Source: Heterodontus francisci
Taxonomy: Eukaryota
Length of the DNA stretch: 64,000 bases
NCBI RefSeq assembly: GCF_036365525.1
Contig: NC_090395.1
Coordinates: 65,249,326-65,313,325, forward strand
Direction of reading: 5' to 3'
The notes beneath the pieces were generated by a model that saw nothing but the letters and a program-made list of their open reading frames with translations, was not told the origin of the DNA and did no database searches. Within the stretch, counting starts at the first letter, position 1. Each line of letters opens with the position of its first letter. A program made the translations under genes and the position numbers. Below, one piece after another: positions 417 to 62,841 of this stretch.

Positions 417-609
417 GGTTCCAGCGAAGGTATCCACAATTTCCAGTAACCTATCTCTGTGTTGGTCAAAGGATTTGTACTGAATCATTTACTTTCTCGT
501 AGAATTACAGATATCTTCCCTGTATTGCATAGCATAAGAAATATTGACAAATCCTACTGTTTCACAACTTGTGTGTGTAGACATCAACAGTTGCAGTTAT
601 GTAAAGATT

Positions 610-5726: not shown

Positions 5727-6046
5727 TTTATTATTTATTTAGAGATACAGCACTGAAACAGGCTCTTCGGCCCACTGAGTCTGTGCCGACCAACAACCAC
5801 CCATTTATACTAACCCTGCAGTAATCCCATATTCCCTACCACCTACCTACACTAGGGGCAATTTATAATGGCCAATTTACCTATCAACCTGCAAGTCTTT
5901 GGCTGTGGGAGGAAACTGGAGCACCCGGCGAAAACCCACGCAGTCACAGGGAGAACTTGCAAACTCCACACAGGCAGTACCCAGAATTGAACCTGGGTCC
6001 TTGTAGCTGTGAGGCTGTGGTGCTAACCACTGCGCCACTGTACCGA
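5727..6046 (-). mobile_element. tRNA-derived V-SINE (HE1-like) inserted in the Penelope element
   Basis: A box tggcgcagtgg, B box ggttcaattc, V-domain-like tgtgtggagtttgca..gttctccc..gtgggtttt, and a (taaa)n tail. Confidence 0.8.
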
Positions 6047-16227: not shown

Positions 16228-16398
16228 TCATTCGGATCTGAAAAGAACTGTAGAATATTCTACAGTTTCCGAGGCACCTTGGCTATTAGCTGTTTTTTGG
16301 GCTTTAAGATCCTGAACATTAATGTAAGTGCTTTCCAAATCAACTCTGGGTACCTTCTTCACAGTGGCGTATGTCACTCCTTCATCTTCCTTCGAAAA
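16228..16398 (-). CDS. Gene A terminal cytoplasmic exon with tyrosine motifs
   Basis: tttgtctcag acceptor. Reads FSKEDEGVTYATVKKVPRVDLESTYINVQDLKAQKTANSQGASETVEYSTVLFRSE*, containing VTYATV, STYINV and VEYSTV. Confidence 0.88.
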   Translation of the reverse strand, partial: FSKEDEGVTYATVKKVPRVDLESTYINVQDLKAQKTANSQGASETVEYSTVLFRSE

Positions 16399-37671: not shown

Positions 37672-37754
37672 TCTGGACTGTTTCTAGCAGGTGAATTAAC
37701 CGTGCTCAGACATCTGAGCTTTGCTTTCTTTGAGTCGGTTGGTTTTTGTAGGTC

Positions 37755-37762
37755 ACTTCCTC
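37755..37762 (-). promoter_or_regulatory. PU.1/Ets motif GAGGAAGT ~85 bp upstream of the leader ATG (copies at 58727-58734, and AAGGAAGT at 62677-62684)
   Basis: Consensus match retained in the diverged paralogous promoter; typical of leukocyte receptor promoters. Confidence 0.45.
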
Positions 37763-40189: not shown

Positions 40190-43100
40190 TTAAATTCATT
40201 CATGGGAAGTGGGCATTGCTGGCTAGGCCAGCACTTATTGCCCATCCCTAATTGCCCTTGAGAAGGTGTTGTTGAGAAGGCCTTCTTGAACCACTGCACC
40301 CATATGGGGTTGGTACACTCACAGTGCTGTTAGGAAGGGAGTTCCAGGATTTTGACCCAGTGACAGTGAAGGAATGGCGATTTAGCTCCAAGTCAGGATG
40401 GTGTGTGGCTTGGAGGGGAACTTGCAGGTGGTGGTGTTCCCATGACTTTGCTGCCCTTGTCCTTTAGGTGGTAGAGGTCATGGGTTTGGAAGGTGCTGTC
40501 TGAGGAGCCTTGGGAGGTTGCTGCAGTGCATCTTGTATATGGTACAGACTGCTGCCACTGGTGGTTGGTGGTGGAGGGAGTGAATGTTTGTGGATGGGGT
40601 GCCAAACAAGCCCCCAGTGATCAATCACTCTGGTATACCACAAAGGTGCTGTCAGTCGGGCATTTTAAATTAAATGTTCAACGTTTTGCATTTTGTTTGG
40701 AAGAGTGTTCCTGGAGGAGTGTGGGGCACGAATTATGACATCATGATTTGCTTTGAAAAGTGTCATGGTTTACAAGTTATTCATCTTTCCACGCAGTAAT
40801 TATTTCATTGACAGACTTTGAGGCTGATTTAAGACTCTTCCTTAGTGTTGCACAAAATTTGTTTTCTGAAAACAGCAACTGTTACAGCAGGTTGCTTTAC
40901 CCTTGATGATGTTGAGCTTCTTGAGTGTTGTTGGAGCTGCACCCATCCAGGAAGTGGAGAATATTCCATCGCACTCCTGACTTGTGCCTTGTCGATGGTG
41001 CACAGGGTTTGTGGAGTCAGGAGGTGAGTTACTCGCTGCAGGATTCCTGCCTCTGACCTGCTGTTGTAGCCACGGTATTTATACGGCTCCTCCAGTTTAG
41101 TTTCTGGTCAATGGTAACCCCCAGGATGTTGATAGTGGGGGATTCAGTGATGGTAATGCCATTGAATGTCAGGGGGAGATGGTTAGATTCTCTCTTGTTG
41201 GAGATGGTCATTCTCTGGCACTTGTGTGTCGCGAATGTTACTTGCCACTTATCAGCCCAAGCCTGGATATTGTCCAGGTCGTGCTGCATTTCTACATGGA
41301 CTGCTTCAGTATCTGAGAAGTCGTGAATGGTGCTGAACATTGTGCAGTCATCAGCGAACATCCCCACTTCTGACCTTATGATTGAAGGAAGGTCATTGAT
41401 GAAGCAGCTGAAGATGGTTGGGCCTGGGACACTACCCTGAGGAACTCCTGCAGTGATATTCTGGAGCTGAGCTGATTGACCTCCAACAACCATAACCATC
41501 TTCGTTTGCGCTAGGTATGACTCCAAGCAGTGGAGAGTTTCCCCCCTGATTACCATTGACTCCAGTTTTGCTAGGGCTCCTTGATGCCATACTCAGTCAA
41601 ATGCTTCCTTGATGTCAAGGACAGTCACTCTCACCTCATCGCTTGTGTTCAGCTCTTTTGTCCATGTTTGAAGCCAGACTGTAATGAGGTCAGGAGCTGA
41701 GTGGCGCTGGCGGAACCCAAACTGAGCGTCACTGAGCAGGTTATTGTTAAGCAAGTGCCGCTTGATAGCACTGTCGACGACGCCTTCCATCACTTTACTG
41801 ATGATTGAGAGTAGACTGATGGGGTGGTAATTGGTAGGGTAGGACTTGCCCTGCTTTTTGTGAACAGGACATACCTGGGCAATTTTCCACATTGCTGGGT
41901 AGATGCCAGTGTTGGAGCTGTATTGGAAACACTTTCCTAGGAGTCCGGCAAATTCTGGAGCACAGGTTTTCAGTATTATTGCCAGAATATTGTCAGGGCC
42001 CATAGCCTTTGCAGTAACCAATGCCTTCAGTTGTTTCCTCATATCACGCGGAGTGAATCGATTTGGCTGAAGACTGGCATCTGTGACGCTGGGGACTTCA
42101 GGAGGAGGCCGAGATTGATCATCAACTCGGCACTTCTGGCTGACTATTGTTGCAAATGCTTGAGGCTTATCTTTTGCACTGATGTGCTGGGCTCCCCCAT
42201 CATTGAGGAGGGGATAGTTGTGGAGTCACCTCCTCCATTTAGTTGTTTAATTATCCACCACCATTCGCAACTGGATGTGGCAGGACTGCAGAGCTTAGAT
42301 CTGATCCTTTGTTTAGGGGATCGCTTAGCTCTGTCCACCGCATGTTAAAGGCCTGCTTGGGTCTGCAATTGAAACTCGACCCGAGTCCGACAGCACCGCC
42401 TGACCTGGCCCGAGTCCTTTGTTTTTTTTCCCGCACCCGACCCAACCCGACCCAACCACCAGAATGAAGTTGATTATATTAAAGAGGTTGTGCTCTACCT
42501 TGGATGGAATCGCTCATTGCAGACTAGTGCGGAGTCCGGATGCACGTTTCTCGCCTTGACGTCCTGGCTGTCACTGTGTACGACTCAATCTGAGCCGAGC
42601 CCGAATGCCAGACCCGGAAGAGTATCCTGACCTGACCCGACTCGAAGCCAACACATGTCGTCGGGTCCGGTCGGGTTTGGGTTGGGTAGCCATGATCTAT
42701 CGCATGCTGCTTCCACAGTTTGGCAAGCAAGTAGTCCTGGTTTGTAGCTTCACCAGGTTGACGCCTCATTTTGAAGTATGCCTGGTGCTGCTCCTGGCAT
42801 GCCCTCCTGCACTCTTCATTGAACCAGGGTTGCTCTCCTGGCTTGATGGTAATGGTAGAGTGCGGGATATGCCGGGCCATGAGGTTACAGATTGTGGTTG
42901 AATACAATTCTGCTGCTGCTGATGGCCCACAGCACTTCATAGATGCCCAGTTTTGCATTGCTAGATCTGTTCGAAATCTATCCCATTTAGCACGGTGATT
43001 GTGCCACACAACATGATGGAGGGTATCCTCAATGTGAAGGCGGGACTTCTCCTCACAAAGTCTGTGCGGTGGTCACTCCTACCAATACCGTCATGGACAG

Positions 43101-43620
43101 ATGCATCTACGGCAGGCAGATTGGTGAGAATGAGGTCAGGTATGTTTTTCCCTCTTGTTGGTTCCCTCACCACCTGCCGCATACCCAGTCCAGCAGCTAT
43201 GTCCTTTAGGACTCGGCCAGCTCGGTCAGTCGTGGTGCTACAGAACCACTGTTCACACTGGTGGTGGACATTGAAGTCCCCCACCCAGAGTAGATTTTAT
43301 GCCCTTGCCACCTGCACTGCTTCCTCCAAGTGGTGTTCAACATGGAGGAGCATTGATTCATCAGTTGAGGGAGGGCGGTAGGTGGTAATCAGCAGGAGGT
43401 TTCCTTGCCCATGTTTAACCTGATGCCATGAGACTTCATGGGGTCAAGAGTCGATGTTAAAGACTCCCAGGACAATTCCCTCCTGACTGTACACCTCTGT
43501 GCTGCCACCTCTGCTGGGACGGTCCTGCCGGTCGGACTGAACATACCTGGGGCTTGTGATGGCGGTGTCTGGGACATTGCCTGTAAGGTATGATTCGGTG
43601 CGTATGACTATGTCCTGTAG
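40190..43620 (-). mobile_element. Second copy of the 610-2907 LINE family, degenerate, with insertions at ~40612-40885 and 42346-42699
   Basis: EN (TESYL, GDFNVHH) and RT (KAMGPD, QFGFR, PQGS, FADD) fragments. Confidence 0.9.
42346..42699. mobile_element. hAT-like MITE
   Basis: cccga-rich subterminal repeats; 8-bp near-TSD ccgcatgt/tcgcatgc. Confidence 0.55.
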
Positions 43621-44189
43621 CACTGGTGCTAACAAATGGTGAGAGAGCTGATCCTCTGCCTGCAGAGCCTGTGTTGGGGATCTCTCTTCCTTGAAGCTGG
43701 AACTCTGAGTCTGCCCTGTGGAGCTGCAAGCAGCTGAGGAAAAGGCAGCTGGTGCTGCTGGTGGTGTTGCTCCTGCTGCAGATGTTGATGTTCCTGCTGC
43801 TCTTGCTCTTTGTCAGAGGTGCAAGGTGGGGCTGCACAGACTGCTCCCAAGCTGTGGTGTAGGCTGATGGTGAGTGATGTGTGTTCTGAAAGTACTTTCA
43901 TTTTTTGTTAAATTTTGATGACTTGTGTTTTATTTGGGAAAACTGAAAAGAATTCCATTTGGGGTCAGAAGGCTTGACTCTTCTGATATGCCTTTGGTTT
44001 CGTTTTGGACAGTCAAAAAGGAGTTTAAAAATCAACCTGAAAGACAAAACCCCAGCTCACCCTGTTCCATCTCTTTGAAAAGCATGCCAGTTTTTCCATC
44101 TCTTTGAGAAGGTCTTTGCAGTGAATGTAAGAAATAGAGAAGTTGTGATGCATTCTTCCTAAATGGCCTGTTTGAAACCCTAATAATAA

Positions 44190-44765
44190 TTAGGGCTCGA
44201 GGAAGAGCATCTCAACTACCGACTAGGCACGCTACAGCCTGTTGGACTGAACATTGAGTTCAATAATTTCAGAGCATGACAGCCCCCCATATTACTTTCA
44301 TTTTTAGTTGTTTTTTTCTTTTTTTCTTTTTTACATTTTTTACAATCTTTTTTTGCATTTATTTCATTTCATGTTAGTTTGTTCAGTTTGCTTACCCACT
44401 GTTGTTTTCACGTTTGCACTCGCTGCTGTTCAATATTCAGTCGGTTAATACCTTATCTGTACGAATGCTTTGTCTTTCAACACACCATTAACATATTGTT
44501 TGCCTTTGCTCCATGACCTTTTGGTCAGCTATGTGGCATTGTCCAATCTACACCTTCTCCTTTGTTATCTCTTGCCCCACCCCCACCTCACTTGCTTATA
44601 ACCTGTGACATTTCTAATATTTGTCAGTTCCGAAGAAGGGTCACTGACCCGAAACGTTAACTCTGCTTCTCTTTCCACAGATGCTGCCAGACCTGCTGAA
44701 TGGTTCCAGCATTTCTTGTTCTTATTTCAGATTTCCAGCATCTGCAGTATTTAGGTTTTATTTTA
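44190..44765 (+). mobile_element. Penelope 3' fragment (short termini also at ~34205-34340 and ~55885-56010)
   Basis: Homologous to 8495-9058; hammerhead core mutated to CCGAAGA at 44626-44662. Confidence 0.85.
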
Positions 44766-46071
44766 CTGTTTGAAACCCTGGTTGCTGCATTTGTTCTGAG
44801 ATGCTGGAAAAACCAGCCGGATAAATTCTTGATGCTGCTTGAACAAATTGCTCCAGAAAAGGATCCCAGTGACAGCCGTTTACGCGTATTTGGGCCGCCA
44901 GACCAAAAAGGGACAATGGGCATCTTTCCATATTTTCTCTTTTTTTCTTCAGGAATCAGCAAGTATTTGGCCGAATTATTCTTTTTTGTCTTTTTTTTTG
45001 TAACAGAGCTGTAAAGAAAAAAGTTATTTTTCGGTGTGTGTGGTGTGTCTAAGGTAAAAAGGGAACTTTCATATTTCACACTGGGTGTTCATGCTTCATT
45101 ACTGATTAAGACTTGTTTTGTAATAAACTTAAAATTTTGTTGCTTTTTAAAGAAACCTAGTCGGTGAATTTTATTCTGGGGTAAAGAGTCTATGATTGAA
45201 CCTATCGGTAACTGGGTAAACATTTAATTATGAGTTGTGACCTGTGGAGAAATGGAACTAGAAAAGACAATGCACTCCTCCCACCTCAGCTGGAACAAGT
45301 GCAAGACAGGAGAAGTGACTTCCAAGAAGTTGGCAATCAAATATCAGGCAGTGATAGCATTCGCTGCGAAGGAGTGCTGTGAGTAGCAACCTCTCACCAG
45401 GCCATGGCTGCAGCCCGTCAGTTTTAATGATCAAAGGCTTCCCAGCCTGTCAGTTTCACTGAAGAAGCAATCCCTGCTGTGCACTTGCCTCGGTGACCCT
45501 GACGAGTTCCACACAGCTCAAGACGTAGGTCCACTGGCGGTTAAAGCCAGAATCCTTGGTTAAAAGAGTACTTAATTGCCTATTTGAATATTTAAGTGAC
45601 TTACCTGACAGTTGCACGTGGGTTCCCCTCTCTACCTTAACGATACCTGGGTGAAACCCGGAAGAAGGCAGGATGATGTCGGGATCCTGACCTGACGTGA
45701 CTTTTAGGGGATTTAACTCTCCAGACACACCCAAACCTGCCTCCACTTCCCTGTAAAAACTGCCCCAATCATTTGGTGATAGTTCCAAACCATAATGCGA
45801 CACCTTTTTAACAAGTTAGTGCTGGTTAATGAAAAGTGGGAATCAATTATCTGTTTGAATCCCATCAGTTGTGAATATTTCAAAAAAATAACTGCTCCCT
45901 AACATAAAAATTCAGCAAATCGTAACTCCTCTTTTTATTATCACAGAAATAATTCACACAATTTCTACAGACCTTACAAAGCATTTCATATGGTAATAAA
46001 ATACAAAAACGACAATATTGAAAAATAACTACTGAAAGAAAGTGAAAATATTCTGGACATTCATGTATGAT

Positions 46072-46154
46072 TTAGTGAATTTTCTGTCTTGCCTTCAAAT
46101 GCAGCTCTGATCCATTTGTATTCTCTGTTTCCATATAACCCATCATTTGCTGGC
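46072..46154 (-). CDS. Gene B putative terminal exon (GQQMMGYMETENTNGSELHLKARQKIH*)
   Basis: ttttccag acceptor, phase 1 fits the TM exon, minus-strand AATAAA at 45934-45939. No homology support. Confidence 0.55.
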
Positions 46155-49100
46155 CTGGAAAACTGAATAAAATTTGATTTGAAGCAATTGAGCTTAAATA
46201 ATTGAATTGAATTCACACTTCAAGACATTCTGGCCAAAAATATGTCGATGAGCGGGTGGGTAGGGATATTCTGGTGTAAGTGCTGAGGTTCACCTGCCAT
46301 TACCTCTGCTCTTGATACTGTTTGACTTTCTTGGGGTTCGGGAAGCTTTCTATTGTGCATGTGGGTGCCCACAGCACTAGGGCACATCTTGTGTGCCAGG
46401 TTGCACAACGTAACATATGGTGTCTGGTCCAAGAGAGGAGATGGTGCTCCTTCCCATCCCCTGCTCAAGTTCGCCCTTGTGTGGGAGGAGGGATGCATTT
46501 TTATTGCAAAAGAATTCATTCCGTTCTGGCCGAGACATCCAGGTTTGTTATCTGAGTTAATGGTCTACTGCTATGACAGTTCCATCTTAGGACCATTGGA
46601 AGTCTTCGCTCCTTCCTATGCCTCTGGCTTGATTGGCAGAGACTCAAGGCCCCACCTTAGTTAATTATTGTAAAAGCCTGAGATGGTGCTGCAGAGTTTC
46701 ACGATATATGTGGCGGTAGCACAGAAGCAGAAATTTTACCTTGTTTTGCCCATAGATCAATTATATATTGACAACAATATCACTTGCACTTACATAGCTC
46801 CTTTACTGTAGAAATAGGTCCCAAGATGCTTCACAGGAGCATTATCAAACAAAATTTGACACCAAGCCACATAATGTGATATAAGGCCAGATGAGCTTGG
46901 TCAAAGAGCTCGGCTTTAAGGAGCATCTTAAATGAGAAAAGAGAGGTAAAGAGGTGGAATGGTTTAGGGAGTGAATTCCAAAGGGCCAGCGCCAATGGTG
47001 GAGGAATTATATAAGCACTCAGGTGGCATTAGAAAATTATATGGATAGACTTCATTCGACACACTTGGTCTCAGGTTACACTCCCATGTTTGATACTGGG
47101 TCAAGCAGCAACAAAACTACAGTCAGTTCTGTTCTGTAACCAGTCACATCAGTCAGTAACAGATGTACGTGAGTGATTTGTATCAAAGCCAATTTTGATC
47201 TTTTTCTCTCTTAGATTCCCACATGAAACCGAGAACTCCACACTAACCGGCATTTTTAACCTTTCTGTTGATAAGCACAAATTTCACCGCGAAAAGCCAT
47301 TGTCATAACACTAGAATGATGGCAATGCATCCGTCACAAAACTAATGAGCAGCAGTTATTTTCTTTTGGGTTATTTGCTGCTTTTCTCGGCAAGTTTCAA
47401 ATTGCTTGAGCTTTTGGACTGAAATGAAATAATTTTGAATATTACAGTGATAAGATTTAAAATATTATACCTGGGCCTTCTGCAAAGCATGTGACTGAAA
47501 CTGTGCAAATCACCAGAGCACCAACGAGAAGCCAACGGAATATCGGCCATATACGGTGACTCTTCAGTTTATCATCTCTGATTAAACAAGGAACTATAAT
47601 TAATAAACTACAAAATATTTTATACCTGAAGTTGAGAAATACATTTCAATCACATGGAGACAGGTAGGTGGTGGGATCCCCACCTGCCACCAACTCGCCC
47701 GATTATACACTCTCCCTGCCTTCAAACCTGACACTCTTCCCACCCAGAATGGAGAGGTTGGGAATTTCCCGATCAGTGATCCCTGGAAACTCTGAGTTAT
47801 TTACAGAAATATGGTAACGATGCAGAATATTGATTTCAACTTTTCAGACACTAACCTGTTTGTTCCAGTGCTGTGAAAAGTGGTGAGAGCTTCAGTAGTT
47901 CCTGTTGTCCAGGTGGTTGGGCCTATTATTGACCTGGAGACAACGGGAAGAATTTTAAATTGACAACGCGGCTCTTTGCGGCAGCACCGGAGGTCGTGCT
48001 GTCGCCCCTTTGGTGAAATACAGCCGGGTGACCGTGATCATGCAGCAGCCAGCCAATTAAGGATGGGGTGGGAGGACCCACTGCAATCAAGGACCTGAGG
48101 TGGGAAAGGGACACCAATGCTGCCATCATCTCACACAACGTCAGGTGCTGGCACCAGATATAAAGGGTTGCCAGCCCTGCACTCACTCCTGGATGTAAAG
48201 AAAGCCTTCCCGAGTGCCCTGTGTTGCTCGGACATTGTCTGCTGCCTATGCTGCATAATAAACAAGGTGCTGATTGCAAGCCTGCACTGGCCATGGCTGA
48301 AGGAAGACCCTGGGTGGCCCCACGGATTAGCGATGCCTCCCTGCAGGATCTCCTCCAGGCTGCAAGGGAAAGGCGGGAGGTCCTCTTCCTCAAGGACAGG
48401 AGGAGGAGACCTGCCCTCCTGACCACGCAAGCCTGGACAGAGATTATGGAGGAAGTCAGCAGCCGTGGAGCCACCCCCAGGGCATGGCTCCAGTGCAGGA
48501 ATTGGGGCAATGGCCTCATCCAGGCTAACTGCAAACACTTTGGACCCTTTGGGTATTGCATGTGTCTCAGCTGAGAGAGAGCATTTGGAGGAAAGTGTGT
48601 GGCCACCCAGTCATGTTGATTGGGGAAGAGCAGCAGGACCTGATGCCTGTGGCTGGGCTGCATCTCGATTAGGGGTGCACGTCAGTCATTGTTAAACCCT
48701 ACACAGTCGCTCGGTAGGGGCCGCATGTAGGAGGTGTATGTGTGACCCCATCATGGCCCACTGGACTATCACCATCAGAAGTCAGGGGCATTTTCCCGCT
48801 GGGAGACTAACTTTGTTCATCTTTCTGTCTGCAGCAGAAGACAGCCCCAATAGGAAGGAACATGCCAGCGCTGGACTCCCTTATCTCCATGTCCTCACCC
48901 TGATGTAGGAGGAAGCCATGGAACAGACTGGGCGCAAGGTGACCAGACCAGAGCTGATGGTGAGGCGGGGGCACTGATCCAAGACAGTGAGTGAGCATCG
49001 CCTGGGGTACAAGGGTGTATCTGGTACTAAAGAGCCATAGTGTGCCTGTAATCACCACTGCATCAGTGGAGCTGCACAGTTGGGGTGGTTGGAATGTGAC

Positions 49101-52100
49101 AATGGGCAGATCCTAACCCTTCAATGTCGATGTTTTCTTATGCAGGTAAAGCTGAATGACATGGGAGAGGGGCTGGAGAGACTGGGGGACAGCCGGCCAT
49201 CTCAGAGAAGGAGAAGGGAGCCTCAGAGGTGCACCATCACATCATTCCCACCAACAGGTGAGGCAACAGTGGACAATGGAGGAGCATATCCAGGCCCTGG
49301 GTGCTGCACTCTCTCTGCCAATCACATGACTGGCTCCCTCCATTGCAAGGTTCAGAGGCAGACCTGCACACCATCACTTTGTCTGTGAGCTCTATGAATT
49401 GGTGGCAAGGAGAGAGGGGGATGAGGCATCTGAAGTCTCCACCGGACACATGTCCCTCTCAGGTCAGCAGGGAAGTACAAGCGTGCTTCATAAAGGGGGA
49501 AGGGAAGGAGCAGCTTCCTCCTGAATCAAGGGTCTCCTCTCAGGGTTTTCCTGGTGTGGGCAGTAGCTCCAAAGCCCCTCTGCTAGTGATGCCAGCGCCA
49601 GATTGTGAGGCAGGGGCACCGAGCCAAGACGATGAGTGAGCATCGCCTGAGGTACAAGGGTCATCTCGGATGACAGAGGTGGTCCCTGCACCTGTGCAGG
49701 AGGCTCTCAGTGTTCTGGGGCCCCCCCAGGCTTGAGGTAGCCAGAGGACGACCACATAGGGCATCCCAAACCAGGAGGCAGCAAGGCCAGCTACCAGCCT
49801 GCCTCAGCCTCAGCTGCCAGTGCAGGGGGCAGAACCACATTGGAGAACCCAGAAAAGTATTAAAAAGAGCATCAAAATGCACTTAGGGGATCATGGGTGA
49901 AGATGCAGTTGAGGTGGGTAGTTGTGCATTTTGTGTGACGCTGAATAAAGAAATGATGTTCACTCACTTTCTGTGATGTCCTTTGGGAACTCATTTAAAC
50001 CCTTCCTCCCAAGGAGCTGGTATTGAGGGACCAAGCCCCGAGTGCTCATCCTTTGGCTTTGTCACTATGTGAAGTGCACCTGGGTGCTGCAGTGCGGAAG
50101 GAAGGAGGCGACAACAGGGCTGTTTAAAGGTAAGGCTTTATCGTTGTGGTTCTAGAAGGTGGTAAGGCTCAAAGGAAATGTGAATATAAGGGCGTCTCAT
50201 GCCTCCCTTACGCGTATCTCATGGCACGTGTTCTGCTCTGCTTGGGACCGTTTATCTGGCACTGCTTGGGCAACATCCTCCTCCCCATCCTTGTCATCAG
50301 AAGAGGCATCACACTCCTCAATGGTCATTGTCTCCGCCCCTCAGTAGTGCCAGGTTGTGCAGTGCACAGCAAACCAACTCAATATGCGTAACCCTTGCCA
50401 GGGCATACTAAAGGGCTCCACGGCATCGATCTCGGCACCAATGGCCTGCTCAATTGTTGCTCAGGTTAACACATTGCAAGTGTACCTCTCCTCTGCATCT
50501 GTGTGTAGGTTTCTCTCAGGCATCAGGAGCCATGTTCTCAGTGGACAGGCCTGGTCTCCAAGGACCTATCCCTGAAGGGATGTGGGGCATGGAAAAGGTT
50601 GGGCACCTGTGATTGACTCTTAGTCTGTAGGCATCATGGCTGCTTCCTGGGAGTTGTGCACACACCTGCAAGATCTGTTTGAGGTGGTTACACTCCATAT
50701 GTTCATTGAGTGAGTGGAAGCCCTTCCCATAATGAAGGGAGCAGGCTGGTCAGTGGAAGCCTTGATGGTCACATGCATGCTTTGATGACCCACTGCACCT
50801 GGGGGAATCCAGCGATGGCCCTGAATCCTATAGCCTGTTTGGATCGTTGCGGAAGCACACATAGTCGCCAGCCTTCCTGAATATGGCATTAGTGACCTTC
50901 CTTATGCAGCGATATGCCGCGGACTGGGAGATTCCACGCGTATCTCCAGTAGATCCCCGGAATGATGCAGTGGCGTAGATGTTCAGTGCTACGGTGACCT
51001 TCAGTGCCAAAGACATCAGGTGCCCACCAAGTCCCATCGGGCTCAGATCATCCTGCATCATGGCACACAGAGCATTGAAGGCCTCCCTGGAGAGACAGAG
51101 TCTTCAAAAACACTGCCTCTTGGACATCTGCAAGTAGTTGATTCTCGGCCGGTATACCCTCTCTGAAGGGTAGCTTCTTCTGCCTGCAGAAAGGAGCTGG
51201 TGTGCCCTCTGTATCCTTCTACAAACTCCAGAGCCCGAGGGAGGACCTCCTGTGTACCCCCAGACTGTGGTATGCCCCTCCCAGTTCATGCGCCTCCCTC
51301 CCCTTCTGCTGCTCCTCCTCCTCAGTAGTGGTCTCAAAGCCAGGGTCTCAAAGCCAGGGTGAATGAGGCCCATGAGAGTTTGCTTCTCCCTAAGTACAAG
51401 ACCTTCAAGGTAGATGGACCCCCTCCCCCACCCTCACATCCCCTTACTTGTGACCTCCGATGATGTGGCACTGCCCATATGGTACACTCGTATGGCTTCC
51501 TGCAGTGCTGGCACCTTGGCCCCCTCAGCCTTCACTACCAAGCAGTGCTGCCTCACTTGATTGCTTCCTTGTGATAGGTATAAAAGTCTGAATTAAGTAG
51601 AATTTGGAAATAGTGTATTATGCCTTTTAGAGTTAGAGATTGAATGGATGGTCAGTTTTTAGAATTCACTGCCATTCCCCTTTAAGAAGGTAGAGTTAGA
51701 AAATGTCAAGGTCACTGTTATGAAGCAGAAACAAGTTGGGAAATCCATTTGTGTCTCTGTTGTCAGGACCTTGGAAGATAAACACACACATTGAAATATC
51801 CTGTCAGTAAGAGGTAGCAACAGACTTAATTGGTTTGTGGGTTTGTGCAGACAGGTTGGCTCCAGAGGTTGCTTTGAGGTGCCATGGAAAGGGCAATTAT
51901 AGATAATGAAACAATAAATGGAATGTAGTCACAGGAATAAGAAAGGTTAAGTAAACACAATTATAAACATTTTGACCAGATAAATGCTCACATCTTCAAC
52001 AGCAAAGGAAGTTCATTAAGTGGAAATGCTAATTAAAGATACGGATTTTAAAAGGAAGACAGGAAGGTCACATCTATGCTAAAAGTCAGATGACACTTCA

Positions 52101-55100
52101 GAAACAGTATAAACATGAGAGGTTTTTGAAGCCAAATTTAGAAATGTTGAATCCTCAAACAACGCTATGCAATGAAGGGACATTTAAGGTAAAAAGTTTA
52201 CTTTACATTTTTATGGATATTCTGGATATTCTAAGATATTTTTGCTGTAACATTAGTAAGGTTAAACTTTTGGATTCTATGTTAGAAATAAGATTATGTG
52301 TTACATCTTTTAGTCATATTTGATATTGTTATATACTTATCCACTGAAGTGTATTGCATGTTAAATTCTTTAATAAATCTATAAAAGTCAATAAATCATC
52401 TCACGTAGCATTCTGTATGCAACCACAAAGAACCCCCTTTCTGTATCTCTTTAAGTGGAGAGATATGTATTGAAGAGAATTCTCAGACCCTTATAATATC
52501 TGGGATATTTATGACTTAGCTTATTTTAATAATTACGGCTATCTGAAAGATGGTAATATTCTCTGTTGGTTTTCTTTATTTGAGTGAAAACTAGTACAAT
52601 TCTTTGGAGCCAAATAAGTGTCTCTGAGAATTTGTCTGGTTTGAACTTGATTAAAGGAGATTCAAAGGGATGTACTCCTGATTTGATTTAGTCCCTATTA
52701 GGGATTAAAGTCATAAATCACTTCATCCCAGTGACGCCAACACTGAGCTCCTGTATCCTTGTCACCTCCTTTCACCAGTCGAGGCCCGGAAGCCCTGTGA
52801 TTTCCATCCATCATCAGATAAATGCACAATGGAGAACAATATTGCTGTGTATTGGGCTCTCATGTACCTTAATTGCCTTCCCGCCTTGTGGATGTATGAC
52901 GTCCGCCCTCCATGTTGATTGCCAACAGTAAAATCCAGAAGGGATGTCACGATGTCGAACTTCCTGTCTGATGCCTCCTGTCCCTATTTTATGCCCCCCC
53001 GCCCCCCACCTCTGTTCCCCTCAAACGGCCCCTTAAAATACAGCCCAATATTGCTGTAAGAGACTGGGATTGATTTTATGCAAACCGACTCCTGTCTTCC
53101 CATTTCCTGAACTTTTCAACACCTACTGCTAGGGCCCCAGAAAAAATTGGAACGCTGAACATGTTGGTGAAGTAAAGCCCACTTCCCGTGGGCTCTGGAA
53201 TATTTGCTCTTCGACTGTAAAAGAAGAGGAAGATCAGCCCAGGGAAATATAAAGGATATGAGTAGGACATCTCAACATAGCAGTGTGGAAAAGAAAGGAG
53301 AAAAACATGAATTCTATCAGTCTAATTTAGTTAATCTCTGTAAAGAAAAGGTGGGTTTTATCAGAAACCCTTGAAATCTGCTTTAGTGCCAAAGCTAAAA
53401 AGAATAGAATCAATTGTAAGTTTCACCACAGATTACAAAGGGTCTGGAATCTGTATAATGTATTTGTCCCTCCAGTTCAGCATTTTAAAAAGGACTCAGT
53501 TAGTTGAAGATTACTTTCATACTTATGACACAATATTGAATTCAACTTTTAAGAGACTAACCTGGTTGTTCCAGTTCTGTGAAAAGCAGTGGTGAGAGCT
53601 GTAGTAACAGAAGCCTCAGTAGTTTCTGTCACCTTGGTGGTTGGGCCCATTGTTGACCTCTGTACTGGGCCTATAACAGATGAACTTGCTGATCATTTTA
53701 TCCCGAAAAGCACTTTTCATATACAGTTTACTCCTCTTAATTGAGTCATATAATGATCTAATCAATCATTTTTAAAAGGAATTTCCCACTTTGTATTGTT
53801 TGTGTTGCTTAATTCAAATGATCAGATCATTCCTGCTTTTTTAGGGAAACATTTGACTGAATTAGCAGCACTGGACTGTGGCACAAAAGGATGAAATCAG
53901 AGACACCGACAACAATATACATGGCTAGTGAATTTCAGCTTGGTGGCTCCTAGCTGAATATCTGGTGCTGGTTTTCCTCCTCCTGTGTGAGTTGGCAGAG
54001 GTTCTGATCACAGAGCGATCGATTGGCATTGGGGAAGTGACACGATAACAACGGGTTGTATTTTACCAGCCCACTGGAGACAGGCTGGGAGGTGGGAGGC
54101 TGCAGAAGACGGCAGCGAAAGGTGTCAGGAGGGGAGTCCATGTTTCCTCGCTGCCATGGGATATTACCAGTGACGGGAAGCTCAACGGTGCTGCCACCAG
54201 CTGAGCAGAGGCGGACGGCCAATTAAACCAATTAGTTGCTCAATTAAAGGCCACTTCCCATTCTGGCAGCCTTCCCGGGGTGGGGGTCCTCCTGTACGGC
54301 CACTCCCTGGTCCATGAGGGATCCCTGGCGCCCCCAAGGCTATGTTGCCATCGCTGGAGGGTGCAGCCCTATGACCGGGTCTGTGTGCCTGAACCCAGCT
54401 TGGTAAAACAAAACCTATCTTGCCTTTGAGGGTGCCTCAGGATGGAGGTTCCCTATCCTCCTTCCTGCATCCTCAGCAGTGGCCACTTCTATCGGTGGTG
54501 CTGCTGAGACTGCTGAGCTATCGGCCCTCTGATTGGGCTGGCAGCTTGGCGAGGCGGCCCCCATCCTCAATTGGACAGCAATGACGGCCGCAGCCTCTTA
54601 ATTGCCCACTGCTGCTAAAATGCCACCCAGTGTCCCTCTGCTCACCCACGTGGGTTCAGGTCTTGCTTTCGGCCCTGGCGACAGGACAACCCTTTCGATG
54701 AGAAAATTCCGGCTGTGAACAGAACAATTGCCAGCGAAATCCTTTCAGTCGGAACATGTTTTTCCAGTCTGTTTCTCTTGCCTCCTTCCTGACGGAGTGG
54801 AAGGATCTTGCTCTGGAAATCCAGTGTCCCCATGAGCCGGGTACCCCAGTAAATGGGCGTCCACCCCTTTGGTGCAAATGAACCTGCCCCTGGGATTAGC
54901 ACAGGGTTACTGTCAGAGCAAACTGGGGAGAATTTCTGGTTTTAAATGTTTCAATTTGGACAGAATAAATGAAATAGAAATACATTAGTCATCTTACCTT
55001 CAGAAACTTCTAATTTTACAGACATCTTGATATTTTGTCCAAGTGTTGGCATTTCTATCACACACCAATAATATCCTTCATCATTCTTCGTGAGGTTATC

Positions 55101-58100
55101 CATGGTTACTGAAAATATCCTTTGTGTTTTGTTATCAGTCAGTGAGAATCTTCCTTTTTTTGGTTTATCAGTAGAAACCACCACCTCAGAAGATAAGTAA
55201 TAATAACCTTCACGCCATTGTTTAACATGGTCCTTGTAATTCCGATCATACTGACAGTCCACAGTGACTGATCCTCCCAATTCACCATGAACCTTCTCGG
55301 GTCCAGTTAATTGAAATGAACCTGTTGGCATATTAATGATGAAAGATTATTAACAACTCTGGCAGGATCAACAAAAACAGTATTTCATCAAATAAACACT
55401 GCTGTTCCTGTTGTTATGGCAATCTTCATTGTAATTACAGATCGAATCCCATTTTTAATATCAAATTCTTTCTGCTGATTCTCATGTCACCAGCACTGTT
55501 ACTGAAATTATTGCATATACTCTGGTTTTGATCCTGATTTTCCTCAATATGGAGTCCTGTGATTTCCTGTTGTGAGCTGGTTGTGGAGCCAGATTCCCCA
55601 CAATCACTGCATTCTGACAAAATCATTCCTGTCATCATTGTTGATTTATATTCTTTATTTACACAGATCATCGCTATTCAGACAAACTAAAAATCTTTCA
55701 GAAAAACAATTTCTTTCATTCTTTCTGACAGTTTCTCTCAGTCTGCCCATTTCTAAGCCCAGTTATTTTATTTCACTTTCTACAGTTGAGTTATCTGGGC
55801 CTAAACTGCTTTTTCTGATCATAGAAACAGTGAAACATTTGGAACAGGTGTGGGCCACTCACCCGCCTTGGCTCCATATCCCTCGATGAAAGGTTACAGA
55901 CCTGAAACGTTAACTCTGTTTCTCTCTCCACAGATGCTGCCTGACCTGCTGAGTATTTCCAGGACTTTCTGTTTATAAATCAGATTTTCAGCATCTGCAG
56001 TATTTTGCTTTAATTTCTTGCACGAACTGTTAGGACCAGACAGTTCGGGCAATATACTCTGTCTGTCTTCTGGAGAAAAAGACTAGATTTATGGAAGTGG
56101 TGGGTTGATATGTGATGGAGGATGGGAGTGTGGGTGTAGCTACACCAGATGGATTGCAGTGGTTCAAGATGGCAGCTCACTACCACCGTCTCAAGGGCAA
56201 TTAGGGGTGGGCATCAAATGCTGGCACTGCCAGCAAAACCCATATCCCAAGAAATGAATTTAAAAGGAAAACACATCAGGAATATTAGCATGCACTGACT
56301 TACTACAGGATATATTTGCTGACCAATCAGGAGCAAGAACAATAGCTAATACTGACCAATCACAGAATACAATAGCCAACCAATCATCAGCAAGAACAAT
56401 AACATGTACCCACCAATCACAGAGACACTCAGCCTGACCAATCATCAACAAGATCCCGCCCATCCTCCATCACCAAAAAACCCACCTTTTCGACAGATTC
56501 AGACTTTTCTCCAGAAGATGGGCAAAGTATGTTGCCTGAAATGTTCTTCTAAGTGATTGTCTTCAAGGAAAGATTGTCTTTTTTCTGAGCAATTCACATG
56601 GTGTAAATCTTCAATTGTCTTACTGAAGATGCAGTTCTTGTTCATATTACAAATTGTTGTCTTTGAAGTATTTTGTGAAGTTGCTGATTCAAATATTGTT
56701 TAACAACAATAATTTGCATTTATACAGCGCATTTAACACAATAAAACGTCCAAGGTGCTTCACAGGAGCATTATAAAGCAAAATAAGATACCGACACACA
56801 TAAGGAAATATTAAGTCAGTTGACCAAAAGTTTGGTCAAAGAGGTAGGTTTTAAGGAGTGTCTTAAAGGAGGCAAGCAAAGTAGAGAGGCAGAGAGGTGT
56901 AGGGAGGGTTTTCCAGAGCTTTGGGCCTCGGCAACTGAAGCTGCAGCCACCAATTGTGGAGCAATTAAAATCAGGTTTGTTCAAGAGGCCAGAATTAGAG
57001 GAGCACTGATATCTCGGAGGATTGTGTGGCTGGATATGATTACAGAGATAGGGAGGGGTGAGGCCAGGGAGGGATTTGAAAACAAGGATGAGAATTTTAA
57101 AATCAAGTGTTGCTTGACAGGGAGCCAGTGTAGGTCAGCAAGCACAGGGATGATAGGTGCATGGGGTCTGTCGTAGTCACATAGGATGTCATTTGTGACT
57201 TTGATAAGAACTGTTTCGGTACTGTGGCAAGGGTGGAAACATAGAAACATGGGAAAATAGGAGCAGGAGTAGGCCATTCGGCCTGTCGAGCCTGCTCCAC
57301 CATTCATTGCAATCATGGCTGATCATCCAAACTCAGTAACCTGTTCCTGTTTTCTCCCCGTATCCCTTGAAACCTGACAGGAAGGATTCAAACATGGAAT
57401 TCCAGGAAAGATGGGAAATGGATTTGGGAGGCGACAACACCTTCAAGGACTTTGGAGAGGAAAAGAATTCTGGATGGAACCCTACGTGAATTGGGTGCAA
57501 GTAGAGGGACCTAATTTCTGTGGGGGTCTGATATCCAACACAGCAGCAGGTTTAATGGGACGCTGTACCAATATTTAACATATCCAATAATGAGCTGCTA
57601 AACTACCCAAACCCCACCCCTCCGAGGACTTCACAGGAGCCAGAAAGCTGGCAGAGCCAGGCTGAGAGCACCCACTGTATGGGCACTCCTGAGGTAGACA
57701 TGACATGAAAATTGTTCCTCTTTTCATGCAGGATAGCAATGAGAAATGTAGTATGAGGACAGGAAGATTAAGATAGTTTCTTTGTGACACTGTTGGTATG
57801 TTAACACACACACAGCATTGCAAAATAAGGACGTGAGCTGTGCAGATTGGTTCACAACAGAGCATTTGGGAAATAGTTATAGAGGGGCTGGTTGTAGAGC
57901 TCACCATGAAAAGCCACAGGTCTATCAGCTCTGAGCTGGTACTGAGAAATATGGTCAAATAATTCCTAGTAAACTCATAAGTCACCTTACAAATGGTTTT
58001 AAAAAAAAATGATTTATTTGAGTTTCGGAGGTTGGGTAAAACACAATATGAAGAAACACTTGAGGCACCCATTCAATTTCTGTTCTGATGCAATTCATTT

Positions 58101-58643
58101 TTGCTGAATTGAAGTCACAGATTGTGTTTTTCTTTCTCCAAATCTACTTCAGTTCTAAACATTAGTATTTCACACAGTTTGTCTTCGAAGAGACAAATGT
58201 GTTCGAGGTTCACCATTTTTCTTTGCAGTCTTCAGAAGGAACTCTATGTGAAGCGCCTTGGATCATTTTAACAAGTTGCATTATGTCGCATCGTTAACTT
58301 AGTGTTCTAAATAAAAAGGAAATGCAGTTAGATTCCTGCCATTGATAAGGAGCTAGAGTTTCAGGAAGGACAGAGCTGCAACAGGAAAGCACAGAAAGAA
58401 GAAAAGGTGATTGAAGATACAGGAGAAGCAGATGAATATCATAAAAATGAACTGATAAGACCAAGTGTGGTTCACCTTTCGCTCACCACAACAGAATTAC
58501 GGGCGACAGAGTAAGTAGAAGTTTCTGGTCTTCACCAGCTCTGATGACAAAAGTGCTTTTTCATAACATTAAGGAACAGGATTTTAAAAAAGAGACTTAC
58601 TTGATGCAGACATAAGAATCAAAAGAGCAATTAATTCCATCAT
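46072..58643 (-). CDS. Gene B: activating-type CD300/pIgR-like receptor, ~247 aa; exons 58601-58643, 54998-55321, 53562-53670, 47856-47933, 47471-47577, 46072-46154
   Basis: GT-AG introns with phases 1,1,2,2,1 give a 744-nt ORF; Arg in the TM; short tail without ITIMs. Confidence 0.8.
47471..47577 (-). CDS. Gene B transmembrane exon with charged Arg
   Basis: cttgtttaatcag acceptor and gtataa donor; reads RDDKLKSHRIWPIFRWLLVGALVICTVSVTCFAEGP; phase 2 to 1 as in the gene A TM exon. Confidence 0.8.
47856..47933 (-). CDS. Gene B stalk exon 2
   Basis: Identical to 26445-26522. Confidence 0.65.
47945..53046. mobile_element. Duplicated PIF/Harbinger relic
   Basis: Same insertion site and ORF fragments as 26534-31369 (48221-48574 Myb/SANT; 50828-51061 transposase). 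Confidence 0.8.
53562..53670 (-). CDS. Gene B stalk exon 1 (GPVQRSTMGPTT...)
   Basis: Two substitutions relative to gene A; splice sites intact. Confidence 0.82.
54998..55321 (-). CDS. Gene B IgV exon lacking the second disulfide (KQWREGYYYLSS)
   Basis: Five substitutions relative to gene A; canonical Ig Cys/Trp and splice sites intact. Confidence 0.92.
58601..58643 (-). CDS. Gene B leader exon (identical to gene A)
   Basis: MMELIALLILMSAS followed by gtaagt. Confidence 0.85.
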
Positions 58644-59447
58644 TCTGGACTGTTTCTAGCAGGTGAATTAACCGTGCTCAGACATCTGAGCTTTGCTTTC
58701 TTTGAGTCGGTTGGTTTTTGTAGGTCACTTCCTCATTCATCCTGTAGTCAAATAAACCATTTCCTCTTTCACAATAAGGAAGAGGTCTGGGGCCAAGTGC
58801 AAACGCTGAACCCATGCTCCCCACCCAGAATAAAGGACTGGGGTGTTATTTTAAGTGGTTTGAGACACTTACCCCCATTACATTCAGAGACTTAGCAGTA
58901 AATTCATGAAATCTCTTTTTCACGCATATTTATGCAACCTCTAATACACAGTATTCACATACAATACTGTTTTATACTCTTATTACACATTCATACTTCT
59001 ACAAGCTTACTCACAACATTTATAAAAAGAAAATATTCTCCGCTGATTCTATCACCATGACAACAGAAAAATGGCCACTGAGGAAGTTGTAACTTTCCCC
59101 CAAATTTCTTTGAAGAATTTAATTTTCTCGAAGTATATATGTGCAGGACTTAAACAAGCTATGATGTGTATTCTGATTAACAAGAACACTGGTGAATGAA
59201 GCAATTAGAAAAGTTTATAATCCTAAAAGCAGTAATGATACATTTCTCACCCTTCTCTTTTCCAGTGAGAAGATGGCTAATTTATATAATTGCTCCTCAT
59301 AATTCAATCCTTCCATCCCTCCATTCACTCAGTCATTCTGGTTGCTCTCCTCTGCATCCTTTCAGTAGCTGCAATATCCTTTTGTACCACCTGTCCGTTA
59401 TATTGGATATATTGGTTATATTGGGTAAAACACAATATGAAGAAACA

Positions 59448-61965
59448 TAGAACAGTACAGCACAGTACAGGCCCTTCGGCCCACGATGTTGTGCCGAACC
59501 TTTAACCTACTCTAAGATCAAACTAACTACCTACCCTTCATTCTAATATCATCCATGTACCTATCTAAGAGTCGCTTAAATGCCCCTAATGTATCTGCTT
59601 CTACTACCACCGCTGGCAGTGCTTTCCACGCACCCACCACTCTCTGTGTAAAGAACAACCTCTGATATCTCCCCGAAACCTTCCTCCAATCACCTTAAAA
59701 TTATGCCCCCTGGTGATAGCCCTTTTCACCCTGGGAAAAAGTCTCTGGCTATCCACTCTATCTATGCCTCTCATCATCTTGTACCCCTCTATCAAGTCAC
59801 CTCTCATCCTTCTTCGCTCCAATGAGAAAAGCCCTAGCTCCCTCAATCTTTCTTCGTAGGACATGCCCTCCAGTCCAGGCAGCATCCTGGTAAATCTCCT
59901 CTGCACCCTCTCTAAAGCTTCCACATCTTTCCTATAATGAGGCGACCAGAACTGAACACAATATTCCAAGTGTGGTCGAACCAGGGCCTTATAGAACTGC
60001 AGCATAACCTCGCAGCTCTTAAACTCAATCCCCCTGTTAATGAATGCCAACACACCATACGCCTTCTTAACAACCCTATCAACTTGGGTGGCAACTTTGA
60101 GCGATCTATGGACATGGACCCCAAGATCCCTTTGTTCCTTCACACTATCAAGAATCCTGTCTTTAAGCCTGTATTCCGCATTCAAATTCGACCTTCCAAA
60201 ATGAATCACTTCACACTTTTCCAGGTTGAACTCCATCTGCCACTTCTCAGCCCAGCTCTGCAATGTGTCAATGTCCCATTGTAACCTACAACGGCCTTCC
60301 ACACTATCCACAACTCCAGCAACCTTTGTGTCATCGGCAAACTTGCTAACCCAGCCTTCCACTTCCTCATCCAAGTCATTTATAAAAATCACAAACAGCA
60401 GAGGTCCCAGAACAGATCCTTGTGGAACACCACTGTCACCGAGCTCCATGCTGAAGACTTTCCATCTACTACCACCCTCTGTCTTCTATGGGCCAGCCAA
60501 TTTTGTATCCAGACAGCCAACTTCCCCTGTATCCCATGCCTCCTCACTTTCTCAATGAGCCTACCATGGGGAACCTTATCAAACACCTTGCTAAAATCCA
60601 TCTCCACCACATCCACTGCTCTTCCTTCATCAATGTGTTTTGTCACATCTTCAAAGAATTCAATAAGGCTTGTGAGGCATGACCTGCCCCTTACAAAGCC
60701 ATGCTGACTGTCTCTAATCAAACCATGCTTTTCCAAATAATCATAAATCCTGTCTCTCAGAATCCTCTCCAATAATTTGCCCACTACCAACATAAGACTG
60801 ACTGGTCTATAATTCCCTGGGTTATCCCTATTCCCTTTCTTGAACATGGGAACAACATTTGCCACCCTCCAATCATCCGGTACTACTCCAGTGGACAGTG
60901 AAGACGCAAAGATCATCACCAAAGGCGCAGCAATCTCTTCCCTCGCTTCCCGTAATATCCTTGCGTATATCCTGTCTGGCCCCGGGGACTTATCTGTCCT
61001 CATATCATTCAAAATTTCCAGCACATCCTCCCTCTTAACCTCAACCTGTTCGAGCATATCAGCCTGTTCCACGCTGTCCTCACAAACGACCAGGTCCCTC
61101 TCACTAGTGAATACTGAAGCAAAGTATTCATTTAGGACCTCCCCTACCTCCTCCGACTCCAGGCACAAGTTCCCTCCACTATCCCTGATCGGCCCTACCC
61201 TCACTCTGGCCATCCTCTTGTTCCTCACATAAGTGTAGAACGCCTTGGGATTTTCCTTAATCCTACCCGCCAAGACTTTCATGTCCCCTTCTAGCTCTCC
61301 TAAGTCCATTCTTCAGTTCCTTCCTGGCTACCTTGTAACGCTGTAGAGCCCTGTCTGATCCTTGCTTCCTCAACCTTAAGTAAGCTTCCTCCTTCCTCTT
61401 GACTAGCTGTTCCACATCTCTTGTCATCCAAGGTTCCTTCACCCTACAATCCCTTCCCTGCCTCATCTGGCCAAACCTATCCAGCAGTCGCAGCACGTGC
61501 TCCCTAAATAACCTCCACATATCTGTCGTGCATTTCCCTGAGAACATCTGTTCCCAATTTATGCTCCCCAGTTCCTGCCTAATAGCATTGTAATTCCCCC
61601 TCTCCCAATTAAATATTTTCCCATCCCGTCTGCTCCTGTCCCTCTCCATGACTATAGTAAAGGTCAGGGAGTTGTGATCACTATCACTGAAATGCTCTCC
61701 CACCGATAGATCTGCCACCTGGCCTGGTTCGTTGCCAAGCACCAAGTCCAACATAGTCTCCCCTCTAGTCAGCCTATCTACATATTGAGTCAGGAAACCT
61801 TCCTGGACACACCTGACAAAAACTGCTCCATCCAAACTATTTGCACTAAGGAGGTTCCAATCAATATTAGGGAAGTTGAAGTCACCCATGACAACAACCC
61901 TGTCGCTTCTGCACCTTTCCAAAATCTGCCTCCCAATCTGTTCCTCCGTGATCTCTGTTGCTATT
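59448..61965 (-). mobile_element. CR1 LINE, 5'-truncated, relatively young, in the intron downstream of the orphan leader
   Basis: Long overlapping ORFs 61263-61922, 60389-61309 and 59604-60449 (GDFNFP, NYRPVSL, PQGSVLGP, KFADD). Confidence 0.93.
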
Positions 61966-62551
61966 GGGGCGGGGGGGGGGGGGTGGGCAGGGTGTGAGGG
62001 GCACCCATTCAGTTTCTGTTCTGATGCAATTCATTTTTGCTGAATTGAAGTAACAGACAGTGTTTTTCTTCAAATCTATTTCAGTTCTAAACATTAGTAT
62101 TTCACACAGTTTGCCTTCTAAGAGACAAATGTGTTCTAGGTTCACTATTTTTCTATGCAGTCTTCAGAAGGAACTCTGTGTGAAGCGCCTTGGATCATTT
62201 TAACAAGTTGCATTATATCGCATCGTTAACTTAGTGTTCTAAATAAAAAGGAAATGCAGTTAGATTCCTGCCATTGATAAGGAGCTAGAGTTTCAGGAAG
62301 GTCAGAGCTGCAACAGGGTAGAAGTAACCAGATGGGAAAGCACAGAAAGAAGAAAAGGCGATTGAAGATACAGGAGAAGCAGATGAATATCATAAAAATG
62401 AACTGATAAGATCAAGTGTCGTTTACCTTTAGCTCACCACAACAGAATTACAGGTGATAGAGTCAGTCATGGTTTCTGGTCTTCACCAGCACAGTTGACA
62501 AAAATAGTTTTAATAACATTAAGGAATAAGATTTTAATAAAAGAGACTTAC

Positions 62552-62591
62552 TTGATACAAACGTAAGAATCAAAAGAGCAATTAATTCCAT
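62552..62591 (-). CDS. Orphan diverged leader exon (MELIALLILTFVS), probably the native first exon of the activating gene
   Basis: gtaagt donor, phase 1. Flanking 61995-62840 is a diverged paralog of gene A intron 1 and promoter (37090-37920). Confidence 0.75.
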
Positions 62592-62841
62592 AATTCTTGA
62601 CTGTTTCTGGTGGTTGAATTAACTGTGACCATAAGCTGTGCTGTGTTTTCTTTGAGTCGGTTGGTTTTTGAAGGTCACTTCCTTATTCGTCCAGTAGTTA
62701 AATAGACCATTTCCTTTTTCACAATAAGGAAGAGGTCTGGGGCCAAGTGCAAACGCTGAACCCATGCTCCCCACCCTGAATAAAGGACTGGGTTCTTATT
62801 TTAGGTGGTTTGTGACACCTACTCTCCATAGCATTCAGAGA

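Follow-up and report, generated by a model that had tools for sequence, protein, structure and literature searches.

Two receptor genes, A and B, lie ~9 kb apart on the minus strand of a 64,000-nt window of the horn shark (Heterodontus francisci) genome (GCF_036365525.1, NC_090395.1, 65,249,326-65,313,325; the window is this whole stretch, and coordinates below are window positions). Gene A is inhibitory (a “brake”) and gene B is activating (an “accelerator”), and the two have near-identical ectodomains and opposite signalling ends. Our analysis indicates that the front of B is probably a DNA-level copy of A that was pasted into an old activating partner, where it replaced the V-type immunoglobulin (IgV) and stalk exons and left the native signalling end in place. 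Judged from the sequence, the event is apparently a duplicative replacement, for which A or an A-like copy served as donor, and not ordinary gene conversion. An earlier interpretation made from the letters alone (hereafter, the sequence-only reading) had described B as a chimera. Comparison of the block and its junctions supports that description, with the 5′ half being of A type and the 3′ end of a different, activating type.

Boundaries of the copied block

Self-BLAST of the window aligns A 26244-38435 with B 47655-59407 at 95.7-99.2% identity in three segments: A 26244-27545 with B 47655-48956 (95.7%), A 27539-34459 with B 49177-56134 (97.3%), and A 35151-38435 with B 56122-59407 (99.2%).

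On the left, the similarity begins abruptly at B ~47651-47655, equivalent to A 26244, and the block ends 77 bp before the B exon that encodes an arginine-containing transmembrane segment (the Arg-TM exon; acceptor at 47577), in good agreement with the ~80 bp of the sequence-only reading. That reading had also described a repeat that continues in A and is cut off in B: an old repeat does cross the A breakpoint (A 26130-26245 vs. 22025-22140, 69% identity, E 1.4e-7), but it is traceable over ~26130-26262 rather than 26040-26310, and at most ~20 bp of it lie inside the block. Sensitive BLAST found no relative of the native left flank of B (47000-47654) in the window, including near the transmembrane (TM) exon of A; therefore, a later repeat insertion in A cannot account for the left boundary.

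On the right, the A-like sequence stops at 59407 and, beyond a short filler, is followed by truncated intron 1 sequence at 59421-59447, as had been proposed; homology resumes at ~62000 after an inserted element, a CR1 in the sequence-only reading and recognised here, by its RVT_1 (reverse transcriptase) domain, as a long interspersed nuclear element (LINE). The next exon, at 62552-62591, is as predicted a leader with an ATG and a GT donor, and no IgV exon lies between it and the block. This native leader and its upstream flank sit 4 kb upstream, and 62000-62841 is 89% identical to the leader and intron 1 of A and B. The junction is non-collinear: A 38435, 764 bp upstream of the A start codon, adjoins the homologue of A 37060, which lies in intron 1, so that B carries two leaders. 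Within the native fragment, ~230 bp of intron 1 (62156-62405 vs. A 37252-37482) are 98% identical to A and B save for a 19-bp indel, against 74-90% for the leader region; either this intronic element is conserved, or a small conversion took place there later.

An old activating partner as recipient

The exon translations agree piecewise with RefSeq proteins (XP_067913484, P0019, and XP_067913486 for A; XP_067913487, P0006, to XP_067913490 for B), and AG/GT splice sites are present at every A and B exon. The IgV is a V-set domain with the canonical B-F disulfide (Pfam V-set, E 2e-15 for B and 1e-16 for A), and it matches structures of pIgR (up to E 2e-39) and CD300/CLM-1 (E 5e-22) in the PDB. 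Gene A carries immunoreceptor tyrosine-based inhibitory or switch motifs (ITIM/ITSM; VTYATV, STYINV, and VEYSTV in P0019 and P0007; exon near 16240-16400); gene B carries a basic TM residue (IWPIFRWLLVGALVICTVSVTCF) and a short 10-residue tail without signalling motifs, its protein ending in ...AEGPVFQASK. The genes are neighbours with IgV domains 95% identical and opposite signalling ends, and they appear to form an old shark paired system of the CD300/pIgR (CMRF35-like) family, in which A is the inhibitory half and B the activating one.

When the 35 residues of the Arg-TM exon were searched against 1.84 billion proteins, four matches were returned; the best three, at E 9e-6 to 6e-4, are catshark XP_038675621 (E 9e-6), cloudy catshark GCB70553, and smooth-hound XP_078054025. 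The pattern W.IFRWLL..AL..C..SVTC is common to the three best matches and a ...QASK-type tail occurs in two, and ITIM tails are likewise kept across species. By this comparison, the Arg-TM module and 10-residue tail of B are evidently native and ancient, conserved across shark orders. The IgV domains pair by species: 95% identity in the horn shark pair (tree support 96/94), 85% in the catshark pair (99/99), and 89% in the smooth-hound pair (94/92), compared with 51-71% between species, except for two orectolobiform genera at 79%. Given this pairing elsewhere and the 89% A-like native leader and intron, the recipient appears to have been the paired partner of A already. In the sequence-only reading, the activating gene that received the ectodomain had possessed an IgV of another kind; these same two observations, the A-like native leader and intron and the match of each activating IgV to its own inhibitory partner in other sharks, speak against that part of it. 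It looks as though an old pair has been homogenised recurrently, with the horn shark block as the most recent round and the one best preserved.

Probable layers of different age within the block

Changepoint analysis split the divergence of the block into three segments (twice the log-likelihood difference to uniformity, 2dlnL = 126): 7/470 differences (1.5%) over A 26244-26713; 108/2130 (5.1%) over A 26714-28854, corresponding to B 48125-50528 and referred to here as the island; and 88/8874 (0.99%) over A 28855-38435. Of the seven differences in the first segment, five lie no more than 68 bp from the left junction; the 270 bp adjoining the right junction contain no A/B difference. The excess of differences in the island is no CpG effect, the mid-size indels (+228 and +42 bp in B; +9 bp in A) all fall there, a 704-bp insertion in A excepted, and DNA depth identifies B 48125-50528 as a high-copy repeat. 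The block is likely a mosaic of at least two ages of A-like sequence, and we lean slightly towards an older A-like layer having been present at B before the latest transfer, with the 5% island and the 11%-diverged native leader as layers.

A single recent copy-and-replace event, which moved the promoter, leader, IgV, and stalk of A into an activating gene with a different ectodomain and was followed by later mutations only, would account for both junctions and for the uniform ~1% divergence of 8.9 kb up to the right junction. The 2.1-kb island, 5.1% diverged and with three mid-size indels inside a ~1% block, makes such an event doubtful; the 89% A-like native leader and intron, as well as the pairing of activating and inhibitory IgV by species in other sharks too, also argue against it. 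We consider it unlikely, and the “one event” of the sequence-only reading is not supported.

Two of the indels can be described further. The 228 bp present in B only (48955-49182) are a local duplication within the island, to judge from the likeness of their first 60 bp to B 49601-49661 and A 27962-28010 (88-90%). The 704-bp insertion, present in intron 1 of A only (34454-35157), is in part a repeat (also at 741-983 and 40316-40560) and in part an inverted copy of the adjacent sequence at 35300-35497. An inverted/direct repeat search of A 26300-30300 found no terminal repeats for the island; Pfam gave no match for open reading frames in the island, across the right boundary of A, or in a transposase-like stretch; and an Rfam scan of 15000-64000 gave none.

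A non-collinear, probably non-homologous join at the right junction

At the right junction TTATATTGG occurs twice with TATATTGG between the copies, and the second copy of TTATATTGG overlaps the TTGG of the native intron. We propose that the copy took the place of the former IgV and stalk of B, between native intron 1 and a site in the intron 77 bp short of the TM exon. The right join would be non-homologous: the TTATATTGG stutter, on a short microhomology, is in keeping with a switch of template or with end joining that left templated filler. Slightly more likely than not, the last event relied on homology within the older layer at the left and created a new non-homologous junction at the right. 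These limits agree with the proposal of the sequence-only reading that the original segment was replaced, and the leader at 62552 is the native gene's own and starts isoform X2.

Ordinary collinear homologous conversion between old tandem paralogues, without structural change, is what is usually invoked for paired receptors of mammals (PMC5701461, PMC12447643), and mosaic identity is typical of it. However, conversion tracts of that kind end in collinear homology and gain no sequence; at B, the flanks are unrelated on both sides, A 38435 is joined to the homologue of 37060, the leader is present twice, and the junction contains filler. Collinear conversion is contradicted by these features unless the assembly is wrong at 59407, and we regard it as very improbable.

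RNA and DNA contigs at the left junction

Contigs aligned to 44500-50499 comprised RNA from the assembly's own sample (contigs X1 and X6), DNA of the same individual (contigs X2), and RNA of a related species (contigs X8); these labels are separate from the isoform numbers. The X1 and X6 contigs show the minus-strand joints 47856>47577 and 47471>46162 with GT..AG sites, and one X1 contig runs from the end of stalk1 through the whole of stalk2 into the Arg-TM exon. The left junction is spanned without differences by DNA contig X2 47459-48195 and by RNA contig X1 47552-47867. Another X1 contig, 48349-50499, has no differences to B and must derive from B, as it is identical to B where A differs by 5%.

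An assembly artefact, i.e. a false duplication or a haplotype mis-join, could be suspected from the length and 95-99% identity of the block, from the restriction of the read evidence to the left junction, and from a divergent second version of 46972-47363 in DNA of the same individual. It is contradicted by the difference-free DNA and RNA contigs at the left junction, by the RNA contig that follows B and not A across the island, by spliced RNA that joins stalk2 to the Arg-TM exon, and by RefSeq models with B-specific residues under either leader; such an artefact is hardly credible.

The second version of 46972-47363 differs from the reference version at 17 positions and by 2 gaps in 218 bp of intron. 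Its depth is 3.5 vs. 8.8 for the reference version, the sum being the local single-copy depth, and its letters equal those of the X8 RNA at 15/15 listed places. It is either a deeply divergent haplotype of B or a hemizygous paralogue.

In the related species, the X8 RNA has the identical stalk2-to-TM joint and a TM exon with 2 changes and an in-frame 9-nt insertion. The insertion, at 47485, lengthens the TM segment at its cytoplasmic end by Tyr-Thr-His. None of the X8 contigs covers the introns that lie upstream of this exon, and these data are therefore silent on the presence or age of the block.

Polarity of the transfer

The block in B sits in a truncated paralogous intron, and for this reason we take B as derived and A, or an A-like copy, as donor, much as the sequence-only reading had it. 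In the IgV tree the branch lengths are 0 for A and 0.054 for B. The opposite polarity, in which the block in B is original and the 5′ half of A was copied from it, draws on two stalk1 residues (Q and S) that are ancestral-like in B and derived in A, and is scarcely plausible given the position of the B block inside a truncated paralogous intron and beside a spare leader, the left boundary of A within a continuous old repeat, and the IgV branch lengths.

Several points weigh against the transplant into an old partner as we reconstruct it. Polarity derives mostly from the position of the block in the truncated paralogous intron; the repeat at the A breakpoint is old (69%) with at most ~20 bp in the block, and says little about direction. 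The contig alignment covers the left junction only, the right junction being known from the assembly. Isoform X2, which starts from the native leader, is a RefSeq prediction. Finally, as a high-copy repeat, the island may owe its sequence to overwriting by a different repeat copy, instead of being an older layer.

Two annotated first exons and changes in the ectodomain

Isoform X2 of B (XP_067913488) combines the native leader MELIALLILTFVS with the B-specific IgV residues and the Arg-TM, and isoform X1 uses the copied leader. As annotated, B has two alternative first exons, each presumably with its own promoter. The native leader is used in annotated X2; therefore, a first exon, and probably a promoter, was added rather than control being replaced. 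The sequence-only reading had expression control copied: 764 bp of upstream sequence were indeed copied, but the native leader is kept in annotated transcripts, i.e. a start was added, not swapped. In RefSeq isoform X3 of B, the TM exon is skipped and the last exon (46005-46162) is read in a different frame (...SFPGQQMMGYMETENTNGSELHLKARQKIH). Among the proteins compared, those of bamboo shark (...ELHLKMGQKIH), catshark (...SSSPGQQMKG), and smooth-hound include forms with tails of this type (P0018, P0016, P0001, P0011, and P0002); thus, a soluble form and two-frame use of the last exon seem conserved across sharks.

The predicted B protein would join the ligand-binding face of A to an adaptor with an immunoreceptor tyrosine-based activation motif (ITAM) through the TM Arg. 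Seven coding differences separate A and B, 7/7 nonsynonymous, five in the IgV exon (A>B: C>R, K>E, C>S, M>T, and V>G) and two in stalk1. Alignment to pIgR D1 places the lost cysteines at the C-C′ disulfide and V>G in the loop equivalent to complementarity-determining region 3 (CDR3-like): A has both cysteines of this second disulfide (WC...C motif), and B has Arg and Ser. The claim of the sequence-only reading that ligand specificity was copied is not supported as it stands, in view of these five residues, which include the lost C-C′ cysteines and the one change in the CDR3-like loop. The C-C′ disulfide is not strict in the shark subfamily, given that catshark and sawshark relatives lack one or both cysteines. 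Relatives suggest that B is the changed copy in the IgV and A the changed copy in the stalk. Selection is not shown: an all-nonsynonymous set has a probability of ~0.15 by chance, nonsynonymous divergence is 1.7% vs. 1% in introns, and the numbers are small. Retention of old sequence in the B IgV, whose Arg/Ser are also the residues of the catshark activating protein, was considered and set aside: relatives lose these cysteines repeatedly, and chance alone should produce clusters of three differences in 26 bp somewhere in the block.

Comparison with known paired receptors

Mammalian paired receptors keep matching ectodomains, which is usually credited to gene conversion. In primates, the inhibitory/activating pair SIGLEC11/SIGLEC16 shares a stretch of upstream sequence and the V-set exon, a mosaic of 97-99% and 88-93% identical parts (PMC5701461), and resembles A/B in this mosaic identity; it differs in its Ig family and in that the exchange is described there as gene conversion in collinear similar regions of ~2-3 kb, whereas A/B has 11.8 kb, a non-collinear junction, filler, and a spare leader annotated as used. 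In dog, the available text of PMC2832619 describes a region of high similarity between CEACAM1 and CEACAM28 that includes the ligand-binding exon, the leader exon, intron 1, and ~1 kb upstream: like A/B, this is an ITIM/ITAM-type pair with similarity across leader, intron 1, and upstream sequence; unlike A/B, it belongs to the CEACAM family, and that text describes no relic of the recipient's own leader. The ectodomains of primate CD300A/CD300C are homogenised within lineages and their signalling ends differ (PMC12447643). Their Ig family is alike by sequence to that of A/B (PDB matches to CD300 and pIgR), the likeness to mammalian CD300 being at the family level; the TM residue is Glu in CD300C vs. 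Arg in B, and PMC12447643 treats the pair at the protein level only, without junction anatomy. In catshark, XP_038675621 (activating) and “CMRF35-like molecule 1” P0013 (inhibitory) have the leader type (MELIALLIL...), Arg-TM, and ITIM modules of A/B and form a more diverged pair than that of horn shark. The literature searched contains no account of shark CD300-like paired receptors.

The horn shark locus is a clear case, in a cartilaginous fish, of a pattern known in mammalian paired receptors, with either breakpoint still readable, and overturns nothing known; what distinguishes it is a legible non-collinear junction, layered ages, and a stranded leader annotated as used. It offers a concrete case of structural transfer, non-collinear and with filler, that adds a second first exon, and a natural setting in which to follow the drift of an activating decoy once it has been copied, with the C-C′ cysteines lost and one CDR3-like residue changed. 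As the signalling modules are old across three shark orders and the ectodomain appears to have been swapped in, the logic of paired receptors and their concerted evolution would reach back to early jawed vertebrates. A wider scenario, which we hold to be speculative and taken as a whole rather unlikely, is that shark paired receptors are repeatedly re-homogenised by non-homologous, template-switch-like pasting of the inhibitory 5′ half including its promoter; that each round would leave layers (11%, 5%, and 1%) and a stranded first exon giving dual control; and that a deeply divergent second B haplotype, seen as the minor DNA contig, may segregate in horn sharks and might lack the latest transplant.

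Feature coordinates and a further observation

Table 1. Features of genes A and B and of the native B fragment, in window positions
Feature	Position	Strand	Remarks
A ITIM exon	near 16240-16400	-	VTYATV, STYINV, VEYSTV
Own 3′ end of gene A	16240-21348	-	TM, cytoplasmic, and ITIM exons
A cytoplasmic exon	near 18310-18360	-	
A TM exon	21233-21348	-	uncharged
Putative donor block in A	26244-38435	-	764 bp upstream, leader, IgV, stalk1, stalk2, introns
A stalk2	26445-26522	-	RefSeq match, AG/GT sites
A stalk1	31885-31993	-	RefSeq match, AG/GT sites
A IgV	33322-33645	-	RefSeq match, AG/GT sites
A leader	37629-37671	-	RefSeq match, AG/GT sites
B last exon	45940-46162	-	tail ...VFQASK, stop 46143-46145, 3′ untranslated region, AATAAA-type signal near 45945
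B native TM exon with Arg (DDKLKSHRIWPIFRWLLVGALVICTVSVTCFAEGP)	47471-47577	-	RNA splice joints; homologues in three other sharks
Native intron remnant, 77 bp, left junction to TM acceptor	47578-47654	-	
Probable A-derived block in B, 11.75 kb	47655-59407	-	leader, IgV, stalk1, stalk2, upstream sequence, introns
B stalk2	47856-47933	-	RefSeq match, AG/GT sites
B stalk1	53562-53670	-	RefSeq match, AG/GT sites
B IgV	54998-55321	-	RefSeq match, AG/GT sites
B leader, probably A-derived	58601-58643	-	RefSeq match, AG/GT sites
Filler, 13 bp	59408-59420	.	TTATATTGG at 59398-59406 and 59416-59424, TATATTGG at 59408-59415
Truncated end of native intron 1	59421-59447	-	homologous to A 37060-37087 and B 58032-58059
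LINE with reverse transcriptase inside native intron 1	59448-61995	-	Pfam RVT_1
Native intron 1, 5′ part	61996-62551	-	80-98% identity to intron 1 of A/B
Native leader exon, coding part MELIALLILTFVS	62552-62591	-	ATG, GT donor; first coding exon of isoform X2
~250 bp upstream of native leader	62592-62841	-	homologous to A/B upstream region; then another LINE

Outside the two genes, LINE/repeat pieces of 600-9059 match the intergenic stretch 40186-44761 at 86-88%, and are either older copies of repeats or traces of an older regional duplication.

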